A stretch of 64,000 bases of DNA from Bugula neritina (lineage: Eukaryota > Animalia > Bryozoa), in the NCBI GenBank assembly GCA_964035545.1, contig OZ037765.1, positions 2,418,001 through 2,482,000 of the forward strand. The letters run 5' to 3'. This document shows positions 9,001 to 63,945 of the stretch, in pieces. The translations under genes and the position numbers were made by a program. A model generated the notes under the pieces. The model ran no database searches. It saw nothing but the letters and a program-made list of their open reading frames with translations, and was not told the DNA's origin. Within the stretch, counting starts at the first letter, position 1. The number at the start of each line of letters is the position of its first letter.

Positions 9001-12000
9001 ATTGACTTGCGACATACCCTGAGTGAACTGTGATACAGTTGTCCCATCTGGTAATCTCGATAGGATTCCATATTTGGGGATACGAGTTACTTTAATTACT
9101 ATTTGCTCTTCTTTAGTATCAGCATCTTCTATTTTTAGTTGTCGGCCGGTAATTTTAGCCACGTGCTAAAATATACAAACAGCACTAGCACCAACAAACA
9201 ACTATATCAACGCTATAATTTTTAAATTATAAATTGAGGTTTTAAAAGTTTTTTTAATTCAAAGTGAATTCGAATTTTAAGCAAAATCGATTAAACATAT
9301 TTAATTTTAGAAGACAAAATACTATTTCATTTATGCATAATGTAAATGACATCAAAAGAGGTTTGCATAATAAAATTATTAGCAAATAGAAATAACAATA
9401 AGGTGGTGATACCTTTCCATGCTGATCAGTTTCTAAAAATCGAATTCCTGTGTTTCTAACAATCCTAGGTATTTGATCATCCAGGAGTTGAATGGTTATT
9501 TCCAGTGTCTAAAAAGTATAGCAATAACTTAAACACAAAGTAGCACAGCTGGTGTTCCAATTGATTGTAGATATATATGGGGTTTCAAAGTTCAAAAGAG
9601 AGGGCAACTCCAGCAAAAACTGAGTATACTATCTTTATTGCTAGCCAAATTTTAGTTTTTCTTGTTTCAGATCAAAATATTTTAAAAGTTGAAAGGAGTG
9701 AATCATTAAGTTTCAGTTTAAATTTGTGACAAGAAACGTACAAAATTTATTGATGGCAATAATTTAAAAAAGTATAGGCTACAACTACAGTCGTAATTTA
9801 AAATACTTCATCTTAATTCCTTTACAAATACAAGAAATAATGCATACCAAAGGAGAAGTGGTCTTGATTAGCTCTCCATCACGCTCAATATAAAACTCCT
9901 TATTTGATTGGTCTGTGACGACAAAGGTAAACCAATCAGAGCTACTCTCAGTGTTGTCATGACGATAGGATACTGCGCCATTGTATATGTCCGCCATTGT
10001 GAATATTGTGCAGGCAGCATCAACTTCCTCTCCATCTCTAGTTAGGATTATGCTACCATGAGTAGGCGGAGCTAACAAGGTTATCAGCAAAGACTCCTCC
10101 TACAAAACATGTCAATCAAAAAATAGGCTTACTCCTACAGAGAACTCCAAAACACAACATGTATCCTTATACAGAAAACACTGTTTTATATAACATGTTT
10201 TAGAAAAATTTAATAATTAGGTAAACAAAAAAGCATTGATCAGTTGCAGTAAATGAAGAATTAGTTATTATTGTAAAGGTCCCTCCTTTGATTTTAGATG
10301 TCAAGGACACTGACTTACAGCTGTGTCGTTGTCTGCAATTTTGATCTCAAACTCGGTGATTTCTTTATCCTGCCCTTCCGCAGCAAAGAGTTTGCCGATA
10401 GTAGCCACAGGAAGTGAGTCATCAACCTGAATAAATCTCACCCGGAACGACTGGGTGACCTAGAAAATATTTCTAGATTTGTCACATTTTCATTGGTTAT
10501 ACAGATATGTCTTAAGCAACAAACTACTTACAAGCACAAAGAGAAAGAGAAGATAACTTACATTATTAAACCCATCGGATGCTGTAAATTTGAAGGAATC
10601 GCCAACAGCCTCTTTTTCAGATTCGTGTACATAAAAGATTCTGTTGGCAACAATATCCGTCATCTTGAAACTTTCTATAGGATACGCTGTCACAAAATAG
10701 ATGAAATTAGTATCAAAATGTAACTCAAACTAAAGCATACGAGTGCTTCTATATATCGAGCTTCAGTTTTGGGCTATACAACATGTAATAAAAACAGTAA
10801 ATAAAGATCCCCAATTTTCAGAGAGGTTTGTATAAATTATAAACCCTCATTATAATAATTACTAAACCATCTTTTGATTACTGCTAGCACAGATGTTAGA
10901 CACTACCTGGTCATCAGGCAACACAGCCAACCACCTCAAACCTCTCTAAAAACCCATAGGTTTAGACGTACTCTACTCTAATACAAAGGCAACAAACCTT
11001 TGGTAAGGTGAAAAGGCTAATCTAACTTTAAACCGAAAAAGTTGAGTAAAGATCAACAAACCTGGACAATGGAATATTATAGAAGCTGACAACACTATTC
11101 CTCACCTTTCATGTGATCATCTTCTAAAACAATGCTACCAAACTCTGGTGAGACATCAATGTAGACAATGAGATCTTCAGCCATAGGTCCTTCGTCAGTT
11201 ATGTATAAGTGAGAGGTGGTGATTGGTGCAAAGCCATCTTCCCGCACGGAGAGAGGAGAGTTTACCCTCACAACTGGCACGGAGTTGTCAGCTAATGGGA
11301 CAATATTACTTCATTATTTTATACACAATATTGAGTATTAGGTAGAAATAATATACCATCACATGGTGACTGAAATATCTCTCTCTTCCTTCCTGCCTCC
11401 CCCTTTCCCTATTAATTTATCTCGTCAATAAACTAACAGCTTACCCATGGCTCAAAGGTCACCTGCTCTTTTAATAACATTAGAAAGCTTGAGCTTTCTT
11501 AAATTCATTTAGCTTGAATACATGTTTGTTATAGAATATATCCCGTGATGTCCCAAGACTGCTTTGTGCAGAGTTTAATGATGTCATAATAACATTTTTG
11601 ACACTTTTTAAAACTTTGCAAAGTATAGAACACAGGCTAAATTCAGCAAGTTTCACATTTTCAAGTAAGTTTATGAAAATACCAGATAGCAGAAAAACTT
11701 AAAATAAAGAAAAATAAATAAATAGTTTGAAGTAGACCACAATGAAACTTGAGCATTTAAACACAAAATATACTTATAGTCTTCAGTTACATTTCACCAA
11801 CCTAGTAGATCAATGTAGAGCACTTGTCCAATCAGACGATTATCATTGAGGTCTACGACATCAAACTTGAAGAAGTCAAAGCCTCCCTCATTGATGTCTT
11901 TTGTGTTTCTATACTTGATGACACCTACAGGACAAATGGTATCATAGTAAGTGTCAACCTCTGATACCTGCTATAGAGAATTGAGCACAAAGGGTACAAT

Positions 12001-38541: not shown

Positions 38542-47288
<8,747 letters not shown>

Positions 47289-55747: not shown

Positions 55748-58700
55748 TCACGCAGGTTCCTTGTGCCACCATGGCCTACTCGCACAAGTTATAAACACAA
55801 TCAGTGCTATCAGACAGAGAAACATGGCAAGGTTTTCAGCTTTAAGTGATGATGGGATGTCACCGTATACAGGATACAGCAGGTGCTCTCTTGTCCAAGG
55901 AGGTACACAAAGCTCGCACTCTTGACTTTTCTTCTTGTAATAACTAAAAGCAGAAGAGATATTGAAATCAAATCACTTATGTTGTGGGGGGGGGGGGGAG
56001 TGATGGCTTGCTTCTTTTACACTAACTAGTAAAATACCCGTGGCTAAATTAATACCAATGAATATGGATGCTACAGCTATTGGTGCAAACAATGGTGGCT
56101 ATATATACTCTTTGTAATGAGAGGATACAACTATCCCAACTAGAATAACTAAAACAACTCATACTTTCTCCTGTAACATTTAAATTCTAAAAGATCTGCT
56201 CCGATTCTAACCAGTAGTTTAAATAATAAGTATCTAAAACCTCTAATTCTCCACTACTTGGAGGATTCACATGATAACTAAGACTATCTATGTAATATGT
56301 ACACTGCACTAATATATTCTTACTACTAACTGGGACACATTTATCAGCCTGTAGATCATAGAAATATAAATAATTTCTTCTGTACCTGCTTGTCCACTAG
56401 CACTGTCTCCCAGTCACTTTGATAGTAGTAATCATAATAAAACTAGGAATTCTTAATATCACAATTATTACTACTGTGCACCATAATATTATCTTTATTT
56501 TTAATGGTTATTGTTTTTTCCATCTAATAACAATAATATTAAAATGATCATTTATTATTCTACACAGTATAGAGAGATAGGTTAGCACTTTAGCAGCCAC
56601 ATATTGCAGTGTTGAGACTCCCAGGTAGCACCTGTAACTCAATGGTTAGCATGCTAGCTTGACCACAGGCCTGTAGGTGAGGGCATTCCTTTTAAACACA
56701 TTCTAACAGGACATGCACACTTGCCATACAATATTATATCAGCAGATATTATTACAAATGATTAGGTAATTCTTCACAGCTTCATATTGCCTGGTAAATT
56801 TTTACAGACATAATTAAAACACAATTTTCGTCATTCCTATGAATAGTTTTATTCTCAAAAATATTTTGAATAAATAGAGGGGGTATTATTTGAGCCCCTC
56901 GTTACGATGCTGTCAAAAGTGATGAGGCCACAGGTTATTATTATATAGGAATAATTATAAGGTGATACATTATTTCATGTAATTAACTGTCTAAAAATGA
57001 AAGTTGCAATGACTGGATTTCAGCCAATTGCAGACTAGTATCTAGTAACCATAGCAACAAGTAGATCAGACAACTTCAGGATGTTGCTGATTAGAGAGTG
57101 TGAGATATCAGTATGAGTAAGTCAACTATGATTCATTGCTAGTAGCTGACCCTAACCTACACAAGATAGAGAATATACACATATGTTAGCTGCGGGTAGA
57201 CATAGCTGCAGGTAGACATAGCTGTAGTTAGACACACTGCAGGTAGCATAATGGATATTACATTGTATACAATACTCCTTCTTGTTTCTACGTCTGGAGT
57301 ATTAGCAGGTAAATATTATATTTGAAATTTCATATTATTATAACGTTTTTGCTTAAAAATCATACACTGTTCTGTACAACAGAAAAACCATAAATGCTTC
57401 ATTAAGTTGAAATATTCTGTTCTCCAAAAAGTTTTTTTAACTTCCTCTAAATCTAAAAATAGCATTAGTTATAGATTTTCTTGTTTTCTCTGAAAAAATA
57501 AAGTCATAAAATTTTAACAGCCCATTCTGCTCCAACCATCAACTAGCTTCATCTATCTTAGCGTGCATACTGGTACAGTTTGACTGGATTTTTACCACAT
57601 TTTCAGCTGAAATTCCAAATGTTATAAACCACTTTGCACTGTGCCAACCTTTATATACATATCATATTTCTAAATAAAATAGAACCATTCTTAGAGGATT
57701 GCACAAAATTAATGTTAAAGAAAACTTTTATTGCTACTGAAAATCATGCATTGTAAAGATCATCTAGCAGATTTAATATGTTTACTAGGTGAAAGCAAGA
57801 CTTAGCAAGTGGTGTTTGGTACCTAAACACTCAGTCAATTAGAGCAGCAAATTAATTTCTATGCCTGCATGATAGCAAAAGCTGTGTCAATCCATTAATT
57901 TTAAAAAGAAGGGTAAACTTAAATTTAATTTTATGATAGTCGAGAAAATGACATACAACTCAAAGGTACTTGCAGAAAAAACTTCTCTTAGCTTAATAAA
58001 AACACAACTAAATTATAATAATTATGATTTATAAACCTAAACGTTATGTTCCCATGAAAGATGTTAAAGATAGAAGTTAGGAGGTGAAGTGATGCACAAG
58101 TTCACAGTATACGCACTTAATCTCTTCAAATGCTATGAAGACTTGAAGAGATCAAATAGTATATGTGATGTGACAAAGATGTCTAGCCACTACATTAAAA
58201 TGCTATTTTAATGTATACACGCAGGGTGTAGATATGACGAAGAGCTCAAGGAGCATACCTGTGGTAAACATGGTGAATGCAGAGAAACCAAGATCTCTAG
58301 CTTGTTTGTACTAAGATACTGTCAGTGCAGTAGAGGGTACAGTGGGAAGGAAAGCTGTGATACAAGATGTGGTGAGTTGATTGAACCACATAATATAATA
58401 ATATATTATTACTATAGTAGTATATTGTATGTATAGCATAATTATATTACAATATTACAAAAAAGTATAAAAATACTAATACTTAAATTGTACTTTTAAT
58501 TATTATAGCACAATAATTATTATAGTATGTACGTATTATTGCTTTAATAATATAAAAATTATATTATGCTAAATGCTATAAATGCACATTATTATATAAT
58601 AACACTAGGAAAATATATGACTATAATAATATTTTTGAATATAGTAATCTTACAGGAAAACACTAAGTGAATAGTGTAAATGCAGGGTATATATAGAATT

Positions 58701-61700
58701 ATATAATGACCATAATAGCATTAGGATACAAGATACCTTGTAGTTATTGTACCATATAGACAATATATTATTGTTTAGTATTTCAGCATACATGAATCAG
58801 CTATAGTTAGTCTGATCACAACTCAATATAAAAGTGAGATATTACAGCCTAAACTAGCAACAACAATGTTTCACCAGTGTTTTTCAAAATAGATCCAAGT
58901 AAGCGCAAACAGACAGTTTCTTTATAAACTAACATTGAACTGCGGATATTGCTTCCCTGTCATTAAGGACAACAAGGCATGAACCTATAGACCTAAAATC
59001 AGTACAACTATAAGCAAAACAACTACTATTACAATTGTTATGAACTTGGTGTGTGTAGGGAATTATTGATTTAAATCTACTTTTTCGTGTGAATATCGAG
59101 TTTTTTACAAGATTAGAACAAGACCACACTATCACATGATATCATTAAGGCGCTTACATAACAATTCTCCAGGAAGACAAGATTATACCTCCACTAAACC
59201 TCTAAGGTCACCTTCTATTACTACCTATAGTATGGAAATCCTTTACAACTTATGGCCAAATTATCACTAGTGGAAAAATATTGTGTCCAGTATGAATAAG
59301 AGAATTAATACGTGTTTTTGAGAATTGATGTTGATTAAGCCGGCATTGTAAAGCACACTCATTAACTATCAGACCGATAATCGAAGATATAGGAGGTAGT
59401 ATATCACTTGATTTCATAGAAGATGGAATAGTTTGTAAAATATTAATTTATTAGAAGTTGCACAGTATTGCCAAATAAAAAAAAAACAATTGTTATTTAT
59501 CCATGAATAATTGCAGTTTTTTTCCTACCGTGCGTACTTATTGTATCAAATTAATATTTTTCTCACAAATTAGTAACCCACGTCTATTTGCAGTGGATTG
59601 TTGTGACAATATGGCGGAACAGTGCCGCAACAAGAGGTACACTTCCCTGTGTAAACTGCCAAAGTGTCTCCGCAGAGTCCTTAGAAGTAGGAAGTGCCCA
59701 AAGACATCTCCGAGCAGAAAGAAAATTCTAGAAACTTTACACACCTATCTATCCTTTTGCAAGAAATCTAAATAGCCTGTGCTCTACACCTTGACAACAG
59801 CCCTACTGTGTCCACTAGAATAAGTTGAAGAGCAAACTGAAGCCAGGGCTATGAAAACCAAATACTTTATAATAAAAAGTAAAATTCATCTTTCAATACT
59901 CATTTATAATGACTTACTGTTAAAAGCTCTCAATGTTTGTATATAGTTAATGATATACTCATGATTCATTTCTCTAGCATTTTCTTTATTTAAATAAGCT
60001 AATGTATAAAATTATTAATTTTATTACACTACTATGGTCATATATATATATATTCATTCATTTTATAAATTTTTCTCTTTTGTCATTTTGAAACACATTT
60101 GGAAAACAAATGTAAATTGTTTTAAGATGGAAATAATTATTAAATGTTATTTTGGTAGACCAATGTTGTTTGATTTACTGCTGTTTTACTATTATAAAAT
60201 GTAAATAATACTCCCACAAGGTAAAATAAATATATTGAATGTATTTATAAATGTGAAAACTAATGCTATTATATATTAGGGCTTCTTTGGCTAACATCAA
60301 CTGAATAAAAGAAATATTCAACCAGCTGTTGTACGTATTCAGAGTAGTAAAACTGATACTAAAGATATTAAAAGTTATTATTGCATATCACCCTGTATGG
60401 GTTTATAGCTTTAGATCAAAACAAAGCATGAAAAATCATGTTTAAATAAACTAAATGTTTACATTTATTACTCAAGTGTGATACTACTATAGTGGGTAAT
60501 TAGATTTATAATTTAACTTCTAAATTTAAGTTTCAGTCTAGTAAATATTTTGGATGCACTTTGTTTAAACAGATTTTATTGCAACTAGATTAGTTCTGAT
60601 TCCATTGATATTTGAAAGAACTAAATATTGTACTTCAAATATTATTGCACTATTTCCTCAATAACACATCAGAATTCCAGAAGCATCTTTGGTTGTCATC
60701 AATGACTCACACTAAGAATATTAAAGAGTACATAGTACTAAATACAAACAAAGCCTTGGATCTTACCTTATGACAGGTAGGGGTGGGGAGGCTGGTACCT
60801 CAACAAACTGTGTGCTGAATGTAAAAGGAAACAACTTCTTAGAAGAGTTGTCACAACCTGTTCCGAGGCAGTCAAATGCCCAATCAACTTCTTTAACACT
60901 AAAACCAAGCAGATAAAAGACAGTCCAGTGCTATGTTTAGATGGAGCTGACACTTATTAGTAATCTAATTACACAAATATTGCTTGTTTACAACAGACTG
61001 TCAACTTCAATTATAAGTGTACAGATTTATTATTAACTTTTCTTTTGTGTGAAAGAATTTCCAAGTTGAGATGTTAAGGAAACTAATAATATTTTACTCC
61101 CTTTGGATGAGTTGTTCTATTTGATTGCAAATGCCCATAGCAGAAACAACCACCAGTTCTATGGCCCACAGCAATAAAAATAATATCATTTTTACACTCT
61201 AAATGTTGCAACTGCTTTGTCATGTGTAGATCTTTGCTTAGCTTACTCTTATGACTTCTGGTAAACTCTTTACCTCTCATAATATGAGCAAGACTAGTGC
61301 TAGTTAAACAGCTTACAACTTCACAACAGCATTTTTTTTTAATATTAAACCCATCATGCCTTTTTCTTCTACACAACGATTTACTTGCTATTGCTAATAA
61401 CAGAACTTGTTTTGGGGGAGGGAAGGGGTAAGAGAGGCTCAACACCTTTGGCGCCAAGTCAATAATAGCTTCAGTTCTCAAAGCTGCTACTCAATATTTC
61501 CCACCAAAAGACAGAAAGCACTGGCAGTGATAACTCACACTATAGGAATTGTCTACTTATTTATTAATAATATTCCGGGGCATAGCTCAGCAGCGAGTTT
61601 CATTGGCTAGTGAATCAAACAATTCCTCAGAACTTAATAGATAGCGTTCCTAGAACTACTTGACCACAGCTATATGAAATGCATGTTACTGACTAATAGC

Positions 61701-63945
61701 CTACCAATCCCAACTCTGACTCAACTGCACTATTAACTCCTTTCCCATTACACACTGATATTATCTAACTAGCTACATCTGAGGCTAAGATCAGTACAAC
61801 ACAGGAAGTGACCTAATAAATATCTCAATGAAAGGAAATAAGATTCATATCACAACCTCTTACCTAACTTTAGCTCCTACGATCTCATAGATGGGAAATC
61901 CCGCAGACTTGCCGGCTAGTGCATAGAGCACTTGCAGACTAGCAGTGGCAGGTACTCCAGAGCACTGGCCCTCAACTGTCACTTTCGGAGTTTCTGTTAC
62001 TACAGTGGCAGGTGTGTCTGTGGTATTACTATTATTAGCAGCAGTAGTAGTAGTAGGAACAGTAGTGACAGTTGTTGGCACAGTAGAGCTGTTAGTTAAA
62101 GAGTTATTAGTAGAGGCCATAGTAGTAGTAGTGGATACTATACTGTAGTCTTTAATATCTCTACAAAGAAGAAAGCAGCAATAATTTACCATTAGATGAA
62201 AAAATTTGTTGCTTACATCCCAGTTTATATGAATGACATCAACTGACAGTGTAAAGTGGGTTCTTGTCCCTTGTTAACAGACACTGTGGGCGTCCCCCAC
62301 ACCCCTACACCACAGGGCAATTTTGTCATTAAATATATTCACCTGGGGTTGTTGTAACCACGTACATAGCTACATGCAAAAAACATGCCGTATATGTCAA
62401 CATAGATAAAACTGACCACAAACAAAACTAACATTTGATAAAGTTGTAGATATAATAGGTTGTAGAACATAATTAGATGTATAGAATATAATGAGATATA
62501 CTGAATATAATTAGATGTAGAGGATATAATTAGCAATGATTAACTAGGGTATAAATAACTGCAGTGGTTGCCAAAAATTAAATTGCCTGGTAGCTGTGAT
62601 TTATTACACTGTAGAAGTATATAAACATAACATGTCTGTAATAAGTGGAAAACCACAATTACAAAATATCTATTTCTGTAATTACAACTTCAAAGCAGTA
62701 TTTTCAAATAACCTTTATAGATTTATATCAAAGTAAAAAGTTGTAAGTTTGCTTCCCAAATTTGTATCCTGCTGTTTAAGGCCTGGCCTCACGCTCTCGT
62801 GAGAATCACACGAAATCGTCTATTTGACACGAAAACACAAACATACGATAAAAATAGAGGGAATTCAAACAAAATCGTCTTCGTTGGGTGCACCCAATGA
62901 AGACGATGGACGAAAAATCGCAATTAATGATAAGCACTACTTGATTGGTCAACAGAATTTTAGCAACAGTAATTATTTCATTTCTACCACGTTTCTCTGT
63001 TTGGCAATTTTCTGCTGTTTGTATCTCGTGCAAGACTGATTCACGGACTATTTATTATGCGTTTCGTCCGACGAGTGTGTGGCTGGTCATAATGAGAGGA
63101 TAACTCACGAAAATCGTCACATGAGTTTCGTGTGATTCTCACGAGCCTGAGGCCAAGCCTTTATACAAATTACGCCTGTGTGAAAATATGCTAAAGTATT
63201 TATAGCAGCATGAAAGAACATTCATTCATGTACATATTACACATTATCATGATACATAATTGAGAACACTAATATTATGGAAGAAAAACCTAAATGAAGT
63301 GCCAGTAAAATGCAATAAAGTTATAAAATCTGTTCAGATGGAGAAAAGCTCTTCTATAATTGCAACTTCCAACTAAAGAAGAAAAGAAAAAAGAGGAAAA
63401 AGAAATTTAGTTGTCATGAATTTAGGCAAACAAATGTTATGTTAAGAAATATCTAGAAGTTTGACTGACAAGCATGTTAACAACTTGTGTAAACACAATA
63501 AAATGGAATAATATTACTCTAAAGTTGCGTTTTAGGAAAAAGTCATGGTCTAGAAGTTATAGCTTTGGCCTAATAGTCAAAAGGTCATGAGTTCAAATCT
63601 TAGCAGAGCCATTTGTGATGTCACTAAAGACATTCAGTTCCAATTGTCACAGCATACACCTTCTTTAACTTAAAACCTCGACTATCAAACAACCAAAACA
63701 AAACCTAGATAATAGCCTAAGGTTTGTAAACATGAAACTAGTCAGTTTAGGTTTCCTATAAGCTGCTCTCAATGAGCACAGGCCTGAATGAGCACAGGCC
63801 TGAATGAGCACAGGCTATGAGTCTGTACCTTAGTATGTATATCCACTGGGAGAAGAACTTGTAGTTTGGAGTCCCGAATCTGCTGATGAACAGATCAGAA
63901 CCTGCGACAGGAAAGTGACTTTCCAGCTCTTCGTACATCTGAGAT
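55748..63945 (-). CDS. TCTN2: Tectonic-2-like ciliary transition-zone protein; last four exons, 5' part beyond the window
   Basis: Exons 63829-63945 (ISRFGTPNY...WIYILR), 61864-62160 (CSGVPA..L.VLYA.AG...EIVGAKV), 60767-60898 (VDWAFDC...C...FSTQFVEVPA.PP.P) and 55748-55943 (C..C...LLYP, TM helix, RPWW...*). All three joins are phase 2. The C-terminal TM plus PW fits TCTN2 rather than TCTN1/3. Confidence 0.85.
57022..57122 (+). promoter_or_regulatory. Putative promoter and 5'UTR exon of the nested gene (CCAAT, RFX X-box)
   Basis: AGCCAAT at ~57022; X-box GTAACCATAGCAAC at 57045-57058; donor GTAAGT at 57117; acceptor CTGCAG ending at 57242, 8 nt before the ATG. Confidence 0.45.
57251..59775 (+). 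CDS. Nested secreted protein, 128 aa: signal peptide, EGF-like domain, basic Cys-rich domain
   Basis: Exons 57251-57308, 58225-58371 and 59594-59775 total 387 nt, with two phase-1 GT-AG introns. Protein: MDITLYTILLLVSTSGVLA-GCRYDEELKEHTCGKHGECRETKISSLFVLRYCQCSRGYSGKESCDTRCVDCCDNMAEQCRNKRYTSLCKLPKCLRRVLRSRKCPKTSPSRKKILETLHTYLSFCKKSK*. AATAAA at 59871. Confidence 0.85.
62779..63160. mobile_element. PIF/Harbinger (Tourist-like) MITE, 382 bp, in a TCTN2 intron
   Basis: Imperfect ~37-bp TIRs (AGGCCTGGCCTCACGCTCTCGTGAGAATCACACGAAA and TTTCGTGTGATTCTCACGAGCCTGAGGCCAAGCCT) flanked by a TTA duplication at 62776-78 and 63161-63; CpG-rich non-coding interior. Confidence 0.85.
63545..63612 (+). mobile_element. 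Possible degenerate tRNA-derived SINE head
   Basis: A-box-like TGGTCTAGAAG and B-box-like GAGTTCAAATC at tRNA-like spacing; no intact cloverleaf. Confidence 0.3.
63771..63816. repeat. 16-bp tandem repeat x3 just inside a TCTN2 donor
   Basis: (AATGAGCACAGGCCTG)x3, the last copy incomplete. Confidence 0.9.

Follow-up and report, generated by a model that had tools for sequence, protein, structure and literature searches.

Does the last intron of a tectonic-family (TCTN) gene of the bryozoan Bugula neritina contain a gene of its own and, if so, what kind of protein does it encode? The intron lies in a stretch of 64,000 nucleotides (contig OZ037765.1 of GenBank assembly GCA_964035545.1, positions 2,418,001 to 2,482,000 of the forward strand), which we call the window and whose positions we use throughout. 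An initial annotation, made from the letters of the window, had proposed that three exons on the plus strand join in frame inside the minus-strand intron 55944-60766 and encode a secreted protein combining an epidermal growth factor (EGF) module with a cationic, cysteine-rich tail. We find that the gene lies antisense within the last intron of TCTN, and that this nesting is conserved in Watersipora subatra and in an animal known from metagenomes. Judged by its substitutions between two Bugula lineages, it is a functional protein-coding gene under strong selection. The best explanation overall, in which our confidence is about evenly divided, is that this constrained nested gene makes a secreted protein of an EGF module and a cationic domain that would act as an extracellular ligand or adaptor.

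In the sequence itself, the ATG of the nested gene stands at 57251 on the plus strand, and the gene spans 57251-59880 (+), wholly within a single minus-strand TCTN intron. Its parts are:

57251-57308, plus strand: exon 1 coding sequence (CDS), 58 nt, with the start codon and signal peptide; 19 codons plus 1 base, phase 1; donor GT at 57309-10
58225-58371, plus strand: exon 2, 147 nt, phase 1-1, EGF-like module, 7 Cys; acceptor AG at 58223-4, donor GTGAGT
59594-59775, plus strand: exon 3 CDS, cationic tail, 7 Cys, TAG stop; acceptor AG at 59592-3
59776-59880, plus strand: 3' untranslated region, with AATAAA at 59871-59876

All splice borders of the three exons are canonical GT/AG, and the exons join in phase 1-1. 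The borders, phases and cysteine spacing proposed for the three exons, together with a GYSG string in the EGF module, were thus confirmed by reading the sequence. The other features claimed for the product also read as described: a predicted signal peptide, an EGF exon of phase 1-1, a K/R-rich tail with eight Cys and the pairs KR, RR and RK, and no transmembrane (TM) helix. The gene had also been called hidden, which proved wrong. When the exon 3 open reading frame (ORF) was used in a word search, the same 128-residue model turned up in GenBank as the hypothetical protein EB796_009114 of B. neritina (P0002 in our searches), which carries the name 'EGF-like domain-containing protein' in UniRef. 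NCBI lists the Watersipora orthologue as an 'uncharacterized protein'. The Bugula model is thus public, though uncharacterised. P0002 differs from the product of the window at two residues (V17I and R66I); it served as query for the whole-protein and tail searches below, and the window exons were searched singly.

The function of the gene can be judged against a second assembly labelled Bugula neritina (GenBank GCA_010799875.2), in which the locus lies on a contig (L004) that has diverged from the lineage of the window. As read from the alignments, the divergence is far above ordinary heterozygosity and fits the known B. neritina cryptic-species complex; the two diverged assemblies therefore offer a natural test of coding constraint. 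A Logan contig (L003, the source of protein P0001) is 99.5% identical to L004 and hence is not independent evidence. The 387-bp CDS shows no indels and 16 substitutions against L004, 14 of them synonymous changes at codon position 3, whereas the introns of the nested gene are 83-91% identical and contain 162 and 188 gap columns. By the Nei-Gojobori method, the CDS has a synonymous divergence (dS) of 0.199 and a non-synonymous divergence (dN) of 0.0066, a ratio of 0.033 (Fisher p=9.5e-9). Exon 2 is 96.6% identical without indels, with four of its five substitutions synonymous; in exon 3 all eight are synonymous, third-position changes. L004 also retains the ATG, the stop codon and each of the four splice dinucleotides. 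A comparison of all six reading frames over exons 2 and 3 left the proposed frame as the only one both open and conserved, and the antisense frame that shares its third positions contains stops. We consider the gene real because its CDS is free of indels, with changes at third positions, next to indel-rich introns, and because it is conserved across species. The host intron as a whole is mostly 64-98% identical to L004 in windows of 100 bp, with two indel-affected windows at 46-53% and frequent indels throughout. Over 43000-64000, non-coding DNA differs from L004 by about 10-20%, and dS is about 0.2 in the nested gene.

The antisense nesting in the last TCTN intron also stands, with the host identified by two Pfam families and the donor and acceptor borders confirmed. 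The host features are:

55944-60766, minus strand: last intron of the TCTN gene; donor AAG/GTAAGA with its first base at 60766, acceptor TTTTAG ending at 55944
55751-55943, minus strand: last TCTN coding exon, encoding a hydrophobic C-terminal segment and the stop; tblastx matches to L005:8734-8931 and L006:647-826

The intron measures 4.8 kb. On L004, the public host model is likewise on the minus strand and encodes 1018 aa with PF25752 and PF07773; the neighbours of the host there are a UPF0561 gene and a USP39-like gene. The initial annotation had asked whether the nesting is conserved in related genomes, and it is: the nested gene occupies the same TCTN intron, in the same antisense layout, on L004, on the Watersipora contig L005 and on the metagenome contig L006. 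The TCTN exons on either side have homologues in L005 and L006, and a UPF0561 gene adjoins the TCTN/nested pair in all three species. As side observations on the host and its surroundings, the TCTN model of Bugula is of unusual length (1018 aa), and its exon 61863-62273 (minus strand) contains a Thr/Ser/Asn-rich, mucin-like stretch with a weak Pfam Mucin match (E=0.005). Within the USP39-like gene, 45024-45800 (minus strand) consists of near-identical short units that give MMSLYVYY and DVIVCVLY repeats in two open frames.

How far does the family extend? A HMMER search of 1.84 billion representative proteins with the tail (P0002:64-128) gave just three hits at E<=0.001: P0001, a Bugula ORF over the same exon 3; P0003 from Watersipora subatra (122 aa, E=1e-11); and P0004 from a metagenome (55 aa, E=9e-4). 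A profile search of a set of 5.8 billion recovered the same family and nothing further. No tail relative beyond this family was found, in searched sets where most genomes of other bryozoans and other phyla are without gene calls. Searched domain by domain, as the initial annotation had proposed, exon 2 is EGF-like with a marginal match to PF00008, and the tail matches this small bryozoan and metagenome family only. No paralogue of either searched exon was found in the window's own genome (216,009,554 bases); by this search, the gene is single-copy in the Bugula genome. The family appears lineage-restricted.

The orthologues share the details of the gene. Each of the 14 Cys has its counterpart in all three species, and the sole change in spacing is between C5 and C6, which is x8 in the metagenome species. 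The exon 3 peptide is 49% and 40% identical to those of its orthologues with every Cys in register, and Bugula and Watersipora share 50% identity over the mature protein. Bugula, Watersipora and the metagenome species also have the three-exon structure and the intron phases in common. The AATAAA lies 96 nt past the stop in Bugula, 102 nt in L004 and 122 nt in L006.

The Watersipora subatra gene lies on contig OY755158.1 (L005) of assembly GCA_963576615.1 (PMC12902671), on the plus strand inside the minus-strand TCTN gene. L005:10137-10206 is a phase-1 exon encoding MITSGGLLLLSCILSSIFSQVLA, followed by G/GT; this exon and L006:1115-1178 are both signal-peptide exons ending A/G. The public Watersipora model instead has a 7-nt first exon (ME) and reads through upstream of exon 2, leaving it without a signal peptide (L005:10001-10206). 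The public first exon was probably mis-called, and the 10137-10206 exon fits the conserved structure better.

The third species is represented by metagenome contigs L006 (ERZ27296354 k141_679809), L007 and L009 (Ga0224501_10002344), which are 99% identical to one another. The orthologue on L006 has the same phases as in Bugula:

L006:1115-1178: signal-peptide exon
L006:1938-2081: EGF exon
L006:2370-2548: tail exon

The contigs have a GC content of 47%, and the nested gene is compact (1.4 kb). Minus-strand TCTN-like exons flank it, with a UPF0561-like exon beyond. Because this derived gene order is shared, the source animal is probably another bryozoan. A scan of JGI metagenomes added solely contigs of the same species.

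Upstream of the nested gene, two features stand out:

56944-57143, plus strand: conserved block, 98-99% identical to L004, 100-300 bp 5' of the ATG, with a CCAAT near 57024
57188-57249, plus strand: tandem repeats, about 4 units of about 16 nt (AGCTGCAGGTAGACAT-like), abutting the start codon

The block is the best-kept stretch of the whole 4.8-kb host intron and exceeds even the coding exons in identity; it is probably a candidate promoter or 5' untranslated region of the nested gene. No promoter similarity was found between Bugula and either Watersipora or the metagenome contig. The repeats vary in copy number, with a 32-nt gap in L004 that corresponds to two units fewer.

What does the gene encode? 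The product has 128 residues, 14 of them Cys (about 12.7 kDa, isoelectric point about 9.3), of which 109 form the mature protein. Exon 1 encodes a signal-like peptide, MDITLYTILLLVSTSGVLA, followed by G. Read by eye, the three orthologues all show the n/h/c signal pattern, with small residues at -1 and -3 and then G (...SGVLA, ...SQVLA and ...RLTDA). No second hydrophobic segment or TM helix was found past residue 20 (maximum Kyte-Doolittle mean over 15 residues 0.52), and the C-terminus is hydrophilic (FCKKSK). The product is thus predicted to be a secreted-looking protein without a membrane anchor.

The EGF module has the spacing C-x10-C-x5-C-x13-C-x-C-x9-C, and its net charge is about 0. 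The EGF signature C-x-C-x2-[GP]-[FYW]-x(4,8)-C is matched in Bugula by CQCSRGYSGKESC, and Watersipora and the metagenome species retain its equivalent as well as the six Cys. Scored alone, the exon 2 peptide matches PF00008 at E=1.9e-4 (22.1 bits, with a cutoff of 21.5). No consensus for Ca binding, O-fucose or O-glucose could be read in the module. Its symmetric phase 1-1 exon is compatible with an origin by exon shuffling.

Beyond the EGF module there are eight further Cys, the first encoded at the end of exon 2 and the other seven by exon 3. Of the residues that exon 3 encodes, 17 are K or R and 4 are D or E (net +13); across the orthologues, the net charge of the tail is +13, +10 and +6. 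A Pfam scan of the tail gave no family. Predicted from a single sequence, the AlphaFold model was poor (58.9 on the predicted local distance difference test, pLDDT), and a fold search with it returned noise only. A four-row alignment of the family raised the AlphaFold2 pLDDT to 76.4, with most 10-residue blocks of the mature part at 70-93. This model has beta hairpins at residues 22-54 (strands 22-24, 29-31, 36-42 and 48-54) and, in the tail, helices at 71-81, 89-99 and 109-127. The tail, a C-terminal cationic domain of about 60 residues, therefore models as a three-helix bundle with eight conserved Cys and no Pfam family.

Fold searches, which the initial annotation had proposed for the tail, gave weak EGF matches for the EGF-type hairpins and only generic helical neighbours for the tail itself. 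The best Foldseek rows in the PDB were EGF modules (EMR2/CD97, Pfs25, NELL, Spitz and neuregulin), all weak (E 0.5-3). In a VIA-align comparison with 48,161 chains, nothing but generic three-helix or TPR-like pieces resembled the tail (best Z 6.7), a score that is uninformative for helical bundles. A row for the RGM N-terminal domain (Z 5.5) was indistinguishable from the others and was set aside. Searches of the ESM Atlas by feature and by shape found only generic EGF and TPR look-alikes under useful thresholds.

How might such a protein work? We favour, by inference only, an extracellular ligand tethered to matrix or glycans. The EGF module would make the protein-protein contact, with a receptor or with matrix; the eight Cys of the tail may form four disulfides that staple its helices; and the basic helical domain would hold the protein on polyanions, such as sulfated glycans or the organic matrix of the cuticle or skeleton. 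Basic regions serve in an analogous way in heparin-binding factors (HB-EGF, amphiregulin, VEGF165 and midkine). Three points weigh against this reading. The match to PF00008 is marginal, and the whole protein P0002 scores 18.7 bits, under the cutoff of 21.5. The net charge of the tail varies two-fold between orthologues, and charge may not be the selected property. Finally, the public Bugula model comes from a gene predictor (AUGUSTUS with transcriptome hints; PMC7576161).

Of the alternatives, a structural role survives best, though we regard it as unlikely. Here the protein would be a component of the organic matrix of the cheilostome cuticle or skeleton, small, basic and cross-linked, whose part would be to bind chitin or acidic matrix and not to signal. 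It is indeed predicted to be secreted, disulfide-rich and basic, and the two named species are calcifying cheilostomes; EGF-like domains are also common in the shell-matrix proteomes of invertebrates. However, Pfam scans found no repeats, low-complexity regions, acidic domain or chitin-binding domain in the protein. No proteomic evidence for it was found either, and a literature search on the locus tag EB796_009114 was blank.

Slightly less probable is a defence or toxin-like peptide, in which the cationic, stapled helical domain would attack the membranes or receptors of microbes or prey, and the EGF module would act as a pro-domain or guide it to its target. In favour are the small size and apparent secretion of the protein and its Cys-rich, predicted helical tail, with a net charge of +6 to +13; sea anemones and ants, moreover, have EGF-like toxins. 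However, genes for defence and venom peptides usually occur in many copies and evolve fast, whereas a single copy of this gene was found in the genome and its dN/dS between Bugula lineages is 0.033. The protein also retains 50% identity across cheilostome families in fixed synteny, and neither Pfam nor the PDB gave a match between its tail and any family of antimicrobial peptides or toxins. We therefore rank this reading low for its single copy and tight constraint; among the three functions that the initial annotation had offered, it fits least.

Processing into a hormone seems improbable, though it has a plausible site. The precursor would be cleaved at a conserved K-[KR] pair (residues 82-83), and maybe at other basic pairs, into a two-chain disulfide-linked product or smaller peptides. 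The aligned residues are KR, KR and KK in the three orthologues, the Bugula context RNKR is a furin-type site, and the pair falls in a predicted loop after helix 1. On the other hand, the remaining basic pairs are not conserved, the Cys on either side of the site are all conserved, which fits one folded domain, and there are no amidation or typical neuropeptide features. A more ambitious version, which we offer as a long shot, is a bryozoan-specific signal built on an undescribed cationic, three-helix, eight-Cys domain, perhaps cut at the K-[KR] loop into a two-chain, hormone-like ligand. The fixed nesting in the last intron of TCTN, a ciliary gene, would then reflect coupled or mutually exclusive regulation in ciliated cells of the larva or lophophore.

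That there is no functional gene, only an ORF and splice sites that arose by chance or a gene-prediction artefact in an intron, would agree with the computational origin of the public models but is effectively refuted by the conservation data, namely the third-position pattern (p=1e-8), the indel-free CDS next to indel-rich introns, the single open frame being the proposed one, and orthologues in two further genomes with conserved Cys spacing and intron phases.

Bryozoa are poorly studied, and almost no secreted factors have been characterised in them. Here, a common EGF module is joined to a domain without other relatives in 1.84 billion representative proteins. The gene is therefore an accessible candidate in the search for extracellular signals or matrix components specific to a lineage, which might serve, for instance, in metamorphosis, budding or the formation of the wall, and its conserved antisense position in TCTN makes a clean case for the persistence of nested gene pairs. 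The gain is nevertheless modest, as the model is already public and no function is yet tied to the gene.

How does the protein compare with known systems? Attractin, a water-borne pheromone of Aplysia (PDB 1t50), is also helical and disulfide-rich, with four aligned Cys and a shared CDTI...M.E.C.N string. The single Bugula sequence matched it in a phmmer search of the PDB (E=0.11, residues 52-87). We rejected this kinship as chance: the match is lost with family profiles, the window allele has R where the match has I, and Pfam has no family for the tail.

The heparin-binding domain of VEGF165 and the modules of midkine and pleiotrophin offer a functional analogy, being cationic modules of about 50-60 residues with at least eight Cys. 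They tether a secreted factor to sulfated glycans, and their folds are largely beta or irregular. In contrast, the Bugula tail has another Cys pattern, three predicted helices and no sequence match to them in Pfam or the PDB.

EGF-CFC proteins (Cripto, Cryptic and Oep) are built in a similar order, with a signal peptide, one variant EGF module and then a small Cys-rich domain. Their EGF module lacks the A loop, their CFC domain has six Cys and is non-helical, and their C-terminus is a hydrophobic glycosylphosphatidylinositol (GPI) signal. The Bugula protein, in contrast, has a long A loop (x10), a cationic second domain with eight Cys that is predicted to be helical, and a hydrophilic C-terminus (KKSK). 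Neither the Pfam scan nor the HMMER search with the tail found a sequence match to EGF-CFC.

The EGFR/ErbB ligands (EGF, TGF-alpha, HB-EGF, amphiregulin, neuregulin and Spitz) are also small EGF-module proteins. Their consensus is CX7CX4-5CX10-13CXCX8GXRC, with an essential Arg before C6. The C2-C3 (x5) and C3-C4 (x13) spacings of the Bugula protein fall within it, and HB-EGF and amphiregulin pair their EGF module with a basic heparin-binding stretch, as here. However, C1-C2 is x10 rather than x7, and C5-C6 is x9 in Bugula and Watersipora and x8 in the metagenome species. The initial annotation had noted that GxRC is absent, which holds throughout the family, as no orthologue has Arg before C6 (GKESC, GTETC and GHLC). 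There is no TM precursor either, and the basic part is C-terminal, Cys-rich and predicted to be folded, rather than an N-terminal linear stretch. Because of its x10 A loop, its lack of the GxRC Arg and its lack of a TM precursor, the protein, as far as its sequence can tell, is not a canonical EGFR ligand.

It differs from other EGF-like proteins of the hEGF type (PF00008) in that its single EGF module opens a mature protein of 109 residues and is joined to a domain not seen in any other EGF protein. What it shares with them is the six Cys, the string C-x-C-x2-G-Y-x(4-5)-C, two predicted beta hairpins and the symmetric phase 1-1 exon.

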